A stretch of 64,000 nucleotides of DNA from Macrostomum lignano. Taxonomy: Eukaryota. The stretch lies in assembly GCA_002269645.1 (NCBI GenBank), contig NIVC01002944.1, forward strand, positions 1-64,000. The letters run 5' to 3'. A program made the translations under genes and the position numbers. Positions 22,601-25,600 of this stretch are shown here, piece by piece (the stretch's first letter is position 1; each line of letters opens with the position of its first letter). The notes under the pieces were generated by a model. The model searched no databases. It saw only the letters and a list, made by a program, of their open reading frames with translations, and was not told the DNA's origin.

Positions 22601-25600
22601 TCTGTTGTTTTATAGAATCATCAATCATGAATTTCCTAGAATCATCAATCAGGGTCATCATAAGCGGTTTCCCAGAATCACCACGAGCCGATTCCTAGAA
22701 AAACCACAAGCTACCATTTTTTCCTATATATTTAGTCACCGAAGCCGTTTTCTTGAACGGCTCACCCTTTTTCCTAGAATCGCAATAAACTCTCATATCA
22801 AGTTTCATCCTCCGCTGTCTAGGCCCGCGAGAGCGCCCCCTGCATCATCTTCATCGACGAGTTGGACGCCATCGGCAAGAAGCGGTCGGGTTCGGCCGGC
22901 TCGGACACGGGCGGCCAGGGCGAGATGGACCAGACGCTCAACCAGCTGCTGGTGGAGATGGACGGCATGGACACCACGGTTGGGGTCGTCTGCTTCGCTG
23001 CCACCAATCGGCACGAGGTGCTCGACACCGCGCTGCTCCGGGCTGGCCGCTTCGACCGGCACATCCTGGTGGACCTGCCCACGCTAATTGAGCGGCAGGA
23101 GCTGTTCGCGCTGTACTTGGGCCAGTACAAGCTGGCGGCGCTGCCGGCCAACTTCAAGTGAGCTGTGATATGCCAGGCTGAGCAGGGATATGCCAGGCTG
23201 CTGAGCAGGGATATGCCAGGCTGAGCAGGGATATGCCAGGCTGCTGAGCAGGGATATGCCAGGCTGAGCTGTGATATGCCAGGCTGAGCAGGGATATGCC
23301 AGGCTGAGCAGGGATATGCCAGACTGAGCAGGGATATGCCAGGCTGAGCAGGGATATGCCAGGCTGAGCAGGGATATGCCAGGCTGAGCAGGGATATGCC
23401 AGGCTGCTGAGCAGGGATATGCCAGGCTGAGCTGTGATATGCCAGGCTGAGCAGGGATATGCCAGGCTGAGCAGGGATATGCCAGGCTGAGCAGGGATAT
23501 GCCAGACTGAGCAGGGATATGCCAGGCTGAGCAGGGATATGCCAGGCTGAGCAGGGATATGCCAGGCTGAGCAGGGATATGCCAGGCTGCTGAGCAGGGA
23601 TATGCCAGGCTGAGCTGTGATATGCCAGGCTGAGCAGGGATATGCCAGGCTGAGCAGGGATATGCCAGGCTGAGCAGGGATATGCCAGGCTGAGCAGGGA
23701 TATGCCAGGCTGAGCTGTGATATGCCAGGCTGAGCAGGGATATGCCAGGCTGAGCTGTGATATGCCAGACTGAGCTGTGATATGCCAGACTGAGCTGTGA
23801 TATGCCAGGCTGAGCAGGGATATGCCAGGCTGAGCAGGGATATGCCAGGCTGAGCAGGAATATGCCATCTTCACCTTCACCATCATCAACCGCCCACCCC
23901 AGCAAGCGGCTGGCCGCGCTGACCCCCGGCCGGTCGGGCGCAGACATCGCCAACGTCTGCAACGAGGCGGCGCTGATTGCCGCTCGCCATGCCAAGTCGG
24001 CCGTTGAAGCCGCCGATTTTGAGGCCGCGCTGGAGCGGGCGGCCGCCCAGAAGCCGGCCCGGCCGGCCCCCATGACCAAGGAGGAGCGGGAGCGCACCGC
24101 CTACAGCGAGGCCGGCAAGGCGCTGGTTGCCTGGATGCTGGAGACGCCCCCGCCCGTGGTTCGAGTCAGCATTGTCCGAAGGCGCGGTGGTGCCGGAGCC
24201 GGTCTGCAGCGACTAAGCACAGACAGGTGAGCTGGGGGAGTCTAGTAGCTGCTCTGAGCACAGACAGGTGAGCTGGGGGAGTCTAGTAGCTGCTCTGAGC
24301 ACGGACAGGTGAGCTGGGGGAGTCTAGTAGCTGCTCTGAGCACGGACAGGTGAGCTGGGGGAGTCTAGTAGCTGGTCTGAGCACGGACAGGTGAGCTGGG
24401 GGAGTCTAGTAGCTGGTCTGAGCACGGACAGGTGAGCTGGGGGGAGTCAGTAGCTGCTCTGAGCACGGACAGGTGAGCTGGGGGAGTCTAGTAGCTGCTC
24501 TGAGCACGGACAGGTGAGCTGGGGGGAGTCAGTAGCTGCTCTGAGCACGGACAGGTGAGCTGGGGGAGTCTAGTAGCTGCTCTGAGCACGGACAGGTGAG
24601 CTGGGGGGAGTCAGTAGCTGCTCTGAGCACGGACAGGTGAGCTGGGGGAGTCTAGTAGCTGCTCTGAGCACGGACAGGTGAACTGGAACTCCGTCCCACA
24701 GAAAGCTGTACACCCGCCAGGCCCTGCTGGAGGCCATCGCCTGCATGCTGGCCGGCCGGGCCGCTGAGACGGTCGCCTTCAACACGGTGAGCAGCGGCGG
24801 CAGCGATGAGCAGCGGGCAGCCACCGACTTGGCTTACAGGCTGGTGCGCGAGCTGGGCATGTCCGACCGCATCGGCCACCTCAGCTTCGACCAGGAGTCC
24901 GCCTCCGTGAACTCGCCAGTTCGCCCCTTCTCGCGCCGGACCGAAGCCCTGTTCGACAGCGAGGCCCAGGCAGTGCTGGGCCAGGCTTTCCGGCTGGCCA
25001 GGTGAGACTCCCCCCCCTCCCCCAGTGCGGTCACCGACCTCCCCCAGTGCGATCACCGACCTCCCCCAGTGCGATCACCGACCTCCCCAGTGCGATCACC
25101 GACCTCCCCCAGTGCGATCACCGACCTCCCCCAGTGCGATCACCGACCTCCCCCAGTGCGATCACCGACCTCCCCCAGTGCGATCACCGACCTCCCCCAG
25201 TGCGATCACCGACCTCCCCCAGTGCGATCACCGACCTCCCCCAGTGCGGTCACCGACCTCCCCCAGTGCGATCACCGACCTCCCCCAGTGCGATCACCGA
25301 CCTCCCCCAGTGCGATCACCGACCTCCCCCAGTGCGATCACCGACCTCCCCCAGTGCGATCACCGACCTCCCCCAGTGCGATCACCGACCTCCCCCAGTG
25401 CGATCACCGACCTCCCCCAGTGCGATCACCGACCTCCCCCAGTGCGATCACCGACCTCCCCCAGTGCGATCACCGACCTCCCCCAGTGCAATCACCGACC
25501 TCCCCCAGTCCTACTCATTCTAACAAAGCGTCTCGTCCCTGCCCCAATCCGAGCAGGGAGGTTCTGGCCAGCAACCGGGGCCGTCTGGACCGGGTGGCCC

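Follow-up and report, generated by a model that had tools for sequence, protein, structure and literature searches.

Loss of the zinc ligands of the M41 domain in the paraplegin of Macrostomum lignano and other flatworms, with the ATPase motifs retained

RESULTS

A seven-exon paraplegin gene

The window analyzed here is the 64-kb stretch at positions 1 to 64,000 of contig NIVC01002944.1, from assembly GCA_002269645.1 of the free-living flatworm Macrostomum lignano. It carries an orthologue of paraplegin (SPG7) on the plus strand at 19693-25713, in seven exons whose junctions are all GT-AG. The encoded protein has lost the three zinc ligands of its M41 peptidase domain, and its ATPase motifs are all intact. 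A six-frame reading of the region gives FtsH-like pieces in different frames between tandem repeats, and we joined the coding sequence (CDS) independently from these reading frames and the GT-AG junctions. The spliced CDS measures 2502 nt (833 codons and a stop), and its coordinates and length are those of the annotated model PAA54251.1 (BOX15_Mlig031724g1). The original prediction for this DNA had described an open frame of 833 amino acids; the 833 residues indeed run without interruption, but they come from a spliced CDS of seven exons and not from one open reading frame (ORF). A single long ORF was ruled out, because only exon-sized ORF pieces are present, mixed with frames that run through intronic tandem repeats, and a bacterial reading of the window was ruled out by the GT-AG introns of a eukaryotic gene. 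The features of the gene are as follows.

19693-25713, plus strand: whole coding span including the stop codon, SPG7 orthologue of 833 aa in 7 exons (spliced model; PAA54251.1; Pfam AAA, AAA_lid_3 and Peptidase_M41)
19693-20204, plus strand: exon 1, basic presequence-like N-terminus and first hydrophobic segment, putative TM1 (20122-20172)
21161-21728, plus strand: exon 2, N-terminal alpha/beta domain between both hydrophobic segments, and putative TM2 (21549-21602) (from hydropathy and the predicted model)
21950-22255, plus strand: exon 3, first part of the AAA module; Walker A reads GPPGCGKT (22112-22135) and the pore loop, of paraplegin type, VIGGLG (22208-22225)
22823-23157, plus strand: exon 4, Walker B IIFIDELD (22844-22867), then the second region of homology, which carries the arginine fingers (23000-23062)
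23903-24226, plus strand: exon 5, AAA lid followed by the first part of M41, in which the former HExxH helix lies
24105-24119, plus strand: SEAGK at the HExxH position, with Ser642 (AGC), Glu643 (GAG, kept) and Lys646 (AAG)
24702-25001, plus strand: exon 6, central M41 domain with the third-ligand helix SSGGSDEQ
24808-24810, plus strand: Glu718 (GAG), aligned with the Asp that is the third zinc ligand (from HMMER alignments to 6nyy and 2ce7)
25557-25713, plus strand: exon 7, C-terminal M41 helices and stop codon

The N-terminus is basic and presequence-like, with no acidic residue before position 95. Hydrophobic stretches could be read directly at residues 144 to 160 and 301 to 318, only the second of which passes a strict Kyte-Doolittle cut-off, and hydropathy peaks at residues 299 to 302. 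Since the GenBank annotation of the M. lignano assembly was built from a genome-guided RNA-seq transcriptome (PMC5730564), PAA54251.1 is a transcript model as well. Older M. lignano models of the same gene in UniRef and WormBase ParaSite (P0002, P0030 and P0122; 546, 471 and 647 aa) are truncated or frameshifted, and P0002 and P0030 miss the M41 domain.

The protease site is lost and the ATPase motifs are kept

The segment 24093-24122 reads CGC ACC GCC TAC AGC GAG GCC GGC AAG GCG. This base reading and the alignment of the protein to AFG3L2 (6nyy) and T. maritima FtsH (2ce7) agree in placing SEAGK (residues 642 to 646) where M41 peptidases carry HExxH, which bears out the original prediction. 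Ser642 and Lys646 occupy the positions of both zinc-binding His residues, and Glu643 aligns with the catalytic Glu of AFG3L2 and T. maritima FtsH. The two His residues had been proposed to be lost through multi-base codon changes, and the codons AGC and AAG are in fact each at least two substitutions away from His (CAY). The region of the third zinc ligand, an Asp about 72 to 74 residues downstream of the motif, is altered to SSGGSDEQ as predicted, and here Glu718 falls on the ligand Asp (Asp649 in AFG3L2 and the Asp of GAANDIE in T. maritima FtsH). In our first homologue search, HExxH together with the Asp was present in 113 of the 117 homologues that covered the site, the exceptions being the Macrostomum copies and the transcript-like Logan contig P0055, which reads QEAGR. 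The departure from HExxH plus Asp is far beyond chance. Because all three zinc ligands are lost (His to Ser, His to Lys and Asp to Glu), the M. lignano subunit is most likely unable to cleave peptide bonds. The M. lignano protein lacks two features that define an active M41 peptidase, HExxH and the Asp, and, judged by its sequence, should not be filed as an active metalloprotease.

In the AAA module, Walker A, Walker B, the pore loop and the second region of homology with the arginine fingers are all intact, as had been stated for the Walker motifs and the arginine fingers. Pfam assigned AAA (3.8e-40), AAA_lid_3 (1.2e-11) and Peptidase_M41 (PF01434, 9.7e-39), the last over 188 of its 191 profile positions. 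The closest solved relative by sequence is human AFG3L2 (6nyy, 1.5e-119), and the AAA domain of human paraplegin (2qz4) matches at 8e-96. Since the elements for ATP binding, hydrolysis, pore-loop contact and arginine-finger action are all kept, ATP binding and hydrolysis as well as substrate pulling would be expected to persist.

Copies of the gene and selection within M. lignano

A second full copy of the gene lies on NIVC01000735.1 (BOX15_Mlig000349g2), with the same exon structure and the same SEAGK site. A third copy is partial; its C-terminal 178 aa, a stretch that takes in the third-ligand region and not SEAGK, are identical. An HExxH in other data or neutral evolution would have spoken against the original prediction; the second copy has the same degenerate site, as does the RNA-seq-derived deposited model, and the divergence between copies points away from neutrality. 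The two full copies differ at 9 of 2502 coding bases, with six synonymous and three nonsynonymous changes, the latter all within the first 246 residues. The resulting ratio of nonsynonymous to synonymous differences (pN/pS, dN/dS) is 0.17 (binomial p 0.012), with no amino acid change in the AAA or M41 domain, and the M41 domain is recognizably conserved across flatworm classes. The gene is intact, spliced and under purifying selection.

The sequenced M. lignano line (DV1) carries large duplicated chromosomes, and blocks of at least 95% identity add up to 180 Mb (PMC5730564), which accounts for the multiple paraplegin copies. The neighboring called genes in the window encode an RMD1-3 family protein (11990-14063), a zf-LITAF-like protein (15266-15685) and a NUDIX hydrolase (26669-27954). 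The second copy is flanked likewise, with RMD1-3 upstream and NUDIX downstream, so the copies are duplicated blocks and not dispersed paralogues.

Loss of the site is shared by flatworm paraplegins

Our database searches returned the best 120 to 150 matches each, most of them without names. An earlier profile built from M41 only gave short proteins (at most 453 aa, with Trichobilharzia as the first fluke match) and missed the full-length flatworm orthologues. The full-length profile of two sequences (Macrostomum and P0055) yielded 27 other flatworm paraplegins. They cover flukes (Paragonimus, Fasciola, Calicophoron, Opisthorchis, Dicrocoelium, six Schistosoma species, Heterobilharzia and Trichobilharzia), tapeworms (Spirometra, Schistocephalus, Taenia, Echinococcus, Hydatigera, Hymenolepis and Rodentolepis) and the monogenean Cichlidogyrus. 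HExxH is missing in all 27, and the position reads xExxR: QEAGR in most, HESGR in schistosomatids and MEAGR in hymenolepidids. Wherever the region of the third ligand is present, its place is taken by Tyr, His or Leu, two gene models being gapped there. None of the 28 flatworm sequences has lost the catalytic Glu, and each has a basic residue (Arg or Lys) at the second His position; Walker A, Walker B, the pore loop and RxGRFDRH are conserved throughout the 27 orthologues. Two of the flatworm sequences are intron-less Logan contigs with untranslated flanks, and because these carry the degenerate motif, it is encoded by transcripts. The S. japonicum entry C1LDY8 is presumably cDNA derived as well. 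The Logan contig P0055 (run SRR21676486) was placed by the tree described below near the schistosomes, that is, as a trematode.

Among the named matches listed, no paraplegin-type flatworm protein has HExxH. We also used a flatworm profile of lid plus M41 to search 1.84 billion cluster representatives exhaustively by HMMER. The 20 representatives from this search that were named belong to molluscs, a fish, a tick, a nematode, a fungus, a choanoflagellate, an acanthocephalan and Seison, and none of these is a flatworm protein with HExxH. The truncated older models probably explain why no Macrostomum cluster appears among the representatives of this search. Since all sampled flukes, tapeworms and the monogenean share the same state, loss of the protease site is not a Macrostomum accident but an old, conserved trait of the flatworm paraplegin. 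The original framing as the oddity of one species was therefore too narrow, all the more as the loss recurs elsewhere in Spiralia.

In the exhaustive search, degenerate sites with intact ATPase motifs were also found in an oyster protein named paraplegin (Magallana gigas XP_011446512.2, P0438; YEAGR), in the acanthocephalan Pomphorhynchus laevis (KAI0983712.1, P0353; RESGH), in Seison nebaliae (KAI3388926.1, P0371; HQSST) and in a paraplegin-type Logan transcript contig (P0373; YLAGQ). The oyster, acanthocephalan and Seison cases point to site loss as a recurrent event in spiralian paraplegins. One further Logan contig, P0338 (839 aa), is of the AFG3 type, with the pore loop MFVGVG and about 54% identity to AFG3L2 fragments, and reads HEAGR, so that its second zinc His has become Arg. 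Were P0338 of flatworm origin, it would be relevant to the AFG3L2 partner proposed below.

Phylogeny and constraint on the two domains

We built a neighbor-joining tree from 314 C-terminal columns with 200 bootstraps. Macrostomum and Neodermata formed a clade in all 200 bootstraps, and this flatworm clade was nested within the paraplegins in 199 of 200, with the AFG3-type subunits outside. Branching within the flatworm clade agrees with flatworm systematics. The protein also carries paraplegin-type signatures, namely, Walker A GPPGCGKT and a pore loop of the form xIGGLG (VIGGLG) rather than MFVGVG. The protein is an SPG7 orthologue, as the original prediction held on its part.

Comparison of the AAA and M41 domains revealed that the two have diverged to different extents. 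Among non-flatworm paraplegins, identity is 73% in AAA and 56% in M41; between flatworm and non-flatworm paraplegins, it is 66% and 38%; and between the neodermatan classes, it is 83% and 56%. Between Macrostomum and Neodermata, M41 identity is 36%. Relative to other paraplegins, the flatworm M41 domain has thus diverged by about 20 identity points beyond what the AAA domain predicts. Column entropy likewise shows the flatworm M41 domain to be more variable relative to AAA, chiefly in the segments around the former active site, while the entropy of the former active-site helix itself is no higher in flatworms than in active paraplegins. The conservation of the flatworm M41 domain is far from neutral decay. 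Because divergence and entropy both fall short of what an unconstrained sequence would show, the domain appears to be kept as a fold, which is expected if it still serves as the base of the hexamer.

Predicted structure

An AlphaFold model built on a 46-sequence alignment reached predicted local distance difference test (pLDDT) values of 85 to 97 over most of AAA and M41. The best structural match of the model is AFG3L2 (6nyy), with a target-normalized template modeling (TM) score of 0.77 to 0.85, and it also matches FtsH and YME1. The structural search further returned the Ycf2-FtsHi chains 8xku, 8xqw and 8xks, at only 22 to 34% identity. According to the model, the M41 fold is retained although the zinc ligands are gone.

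On the N-terminal side, the Pfam annotation of the search matches reports FtsH_ext (PF06480) for most non-flatworm paraplegins and for none of the flatworm ones. Despite this missing match, the predicted Macrostomum model keeps a confident alpha/beta domain at residues 178 to 293 (pLDDT 80 to 93 over residues 180 to 290).

Tandem repeats in the introns

About 27% of the window consists of tandem arrays with a period of 10 nt or more. All six introns of the gene (within 20205-25556) hold such an array, with periods of 29, 40, 24, 20, 41 and 22 nt, and in five of the six the array makes up 54 to 97% of the intron. Intron lengths diverge strongly between both genomic copies, for example, 956 nt versus 5833 nt for intron 1. 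At the boundary of exon 5 and intron 5 (24216-24686), the 41-nt array takes in the last 11 nt of exon 5, and within it the 5' splice site ACAG/GTGAGCTGGGGG is repeated 12 times (9 times in the second copy). Because use of any repeat but the first adds 41 nt and shifts the frame, precise splice-site choice is needed at exon 5.

DISCUSSION

Proposed function

We think it rather likely that the flatworm paraplegin is a protease-dead, ATPase-competent subunit of the m-AAA ring, with AFG3L2 supplying the cleavage. Taking the above-described data together, we infer that the protein lacks proteolytic activity, retains ATPase activity, resides in mitochondria and works with AFG3L2. It would sit as a non-proteolytic partner in hexamers that alternate with AFG3L2, where it would still bind and hydrolyze ATP, pull substrate and so add ATPase and unfoldase strokes. 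Through its retained M41 base it would contribute to ring assembly and perhaps to substrate choice, and peptide bonds would be cut by the AFG3L2 subunits only. In yeast, mutation of the proteolytic site in only one of Yta10 and Yta12 is reportedly tolerated (Arlt et al., 1998). Paraplegin belongs to the m-AAA protease of the inner mitochondrial membrane, which faces the matrix. In mammals, the only assemblies known for paraplegin are heterohexamers in which it alternates with AFG3L2, and AFG3L2 also forms rings alone (PMC12994072).

A wider proposal follows the distribution of the loss, and we give it an even chance. It holds that the peptidase site has been dispensable throughout rhabditophoran history and was lost repeatedly in other Spiralia (oysters, Acanthocephala and Seison), that the conserved and selected job of animal paraplegin is non-proteolytic (ATP-driven pulling, ring assembly or substrate choice for AFG3L2), and that a salt bridge between the Glu and the basic residue replaces zinc as the structural staple. 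The invariance of the Glu and the constant basic residue at the second His position, as read from the alignment, suggest such a structural salt bridge.

Alternative explanations

The retained ATPase module would also suit an unfoldase, translocase or scaffold that is driven by ATP and acts without AFG3L2, either as a homo-oligomer or as part of another inner-membrane complex. Analogous cases would be plant FtsHi, which works in the Ycf2-FtsHi import motor, and the function at the permeability transition pore that has been proposed for SPG7 independently of its protease. The known M41 pseudoproteases are indeed motors in a different complex (8xku and 8xqw; PMC11266112), the flatworm ATPase module is more strongly conserved than M41, and the loss in flatworms of the FtsH_ext match that other paraplegins keep suggests altered contacts on the intermembrane-space side. 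Mammalian paraplegin, however, is seen only together with AFG3L2, in hetero-oligomers (PMC12994072), the M41 domain that forms the hexamer base is retained with a confidently predicted fold, and the sequence holds no pointer to a new partner, so we regard a role apart from AFG3L2 as improbable. The same M41 domain might instead still cleave through an unconventional metal site or mechanism, in which Glu643, Glu718 and another residue bind the metal or Lys646 is catalytic. The catalytic Glu in 28 of 28 flatworm sequences could be read in this way, as could the Arg or Lys that always fills the second His position and marks the former active-site helix as still constrained, with an entropy no higher than in active paraplegins. 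But the first His position varies (Ser, Gln, His and Met) and so does the third ligand (Glu, Tyr, His and Leu), and because these positions vary freely, a working alternative site is disfavored. We know of no M41 enzyme that functions without both His ligands. HExxHx74D is moreover given as defining for M41 (PMC11266112), and we consider retained proteolysis by such a route very unlikely.

The remaining explanation takes this locus for a redundant copy or one in decay, on its way to becoming a pseudogene, or takes the site for an assembly error, with a canonical SPG7 elsewhere doing the work. It draws on the highly duplicated DV1 genome, whose near-identical blocks were described above (PMC5730564), and on the fact that the Macrostomum M41 proteins considered here come from the best matches listed. 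Against a decaying copy stand the frame that stays open through seven exons and the canonical splice sites, both features of the two full copies, the pN/pS of 0.17 with AAA and M41 free of amino acid changes, the same loss in 27 orthologues from distant flatworms with invariant ATPase motifs, and the lack of any paraplegin-type flatworm protein with HExxH among the named matches listed. An assembly error is at odds with the same site in the second full copy and the same third-ligand region in the partial third one. Altogether, we give this explanation hardly any chance.

Several observations weigh against the proposal of a protease-dead m-AAA subunit working with AFG3L2. Inactivity is a reading of the sequence, Glu643 is kept, Glu718 could in principle bind metal, and schistosomes still have the first His (HESGR). 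Among the matches listed there is no AFG3L2 of Macrostomum or any other flatworm, and the partner is assumed. Likewise, a second, canonical flatworm SPG7 was not found among the best 120 to 150 matches, most of which are nameless. The dN/dS estimate is based on just nine differences, and the expression of this locus rests on how the annotation was built, from RNA-seq-derived models. The grouping of Macrostomum with Neodermata may have been helped by long-branch attraction. Since site loss recurs elsewhere in Spiralia, a single shared loss in Macrostomum and Neodermata is uncertain, and two independent losses may have occurred.

Comparison with known systems

In the literature searched, we found no paper that links paraplegin with flatworms or with pseudoproteases, and the locus tags are likewise absent there. 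A 2024 review of metallopeptidase pseudoenzymes gives only FtsHi1-5 for M41 (PMC11266112). The M. lignano protein has the hallmarks of an M41 pseudoprotease, with the fold and the ATPase motifs kept, the zinc ligands lost and the gene under selection, and it would add an animal, mitochondrial case to a group so far represented by plant FtsHi. Flatworm proteins go by database names such as "Paraplegin" and "ATP-dependent metallopeptidase HflB", which suggest an enzymatic activity that is probably lacking, a point of relevance to shortlists of parasite proteases as drug targets.

With paraplegin/SPG7 (MEROPS M41), the M. lignano protein shares the domain order, that is, a presequence-like N-terminus, two hydrophobic segments around the alpha/beta domain, AAA, lid and M41, and both it and human SPG7 have Walker A GPPGCGKT and the pore loop VIGGLG. 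It differs in lacking all three zinc ligands, in its more diverged M41 domain and in the unmatched FtsH_ext model. AFG3L2 and Yta10-Yta12 have the same ring-forming architecture, and AFG3L2 is both the best solved match and the presumed partner. The AFG3-type subunits, however, carry the pore loop MFVGVG, GPPGTGKT and an intact HExxH plus Asp, and the M. lignano protein lies outside their clade.

In FtsHi1-5 of plants and algae, the zinc motif is lost (for example, TEVGV, NEAAM, REAAV and WAAGR), with Tyr, Thr, Ser or Glu in place of the third ligand (PMC11266112). They likewise keep the M41 fold and the AAA motor, but they belong to a chloroplast inner-envelope import motor with Ycf2 and not to a protease ring. 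The flatworm paraplegin, in contrast, keeps the catalytic Glu, a basic residue at the second His position and about 36 to 38% M41 identity to active paraplegins. Because it is nested in animal paraplegins and matches the FtsHi chains at only 22 to 34% identity, it does not share its descent with plastid FtsHi, and the two losses have independent origins.

The contribution of paraplegin to the m-AAA protease is a question in mitochondrial biology and in SPG7 spastic paraplegia; AFG3L2 self-assembles and paraplegin does not. Flatworms, which include the transgenic model M. lignano, may offer a natural experiment in which, without engineering, the role in ATPase action and assembly is set apart from proteolysis. 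The closest laboratory counterparts are engineered m-AAA site mutants, the Glu-to-Gln AFG3L2 of 6nyy (HQAGH in our alignment) and those of yeast Yta10/Yta12, in which some or all subunits do not cleave yet still hydrolyze ATP and translocate substrate. These mutants keep the zinc ligands and carry point changes made in the laboratory, whereas in flatworms the ligands have gone naturally and across a phylum.

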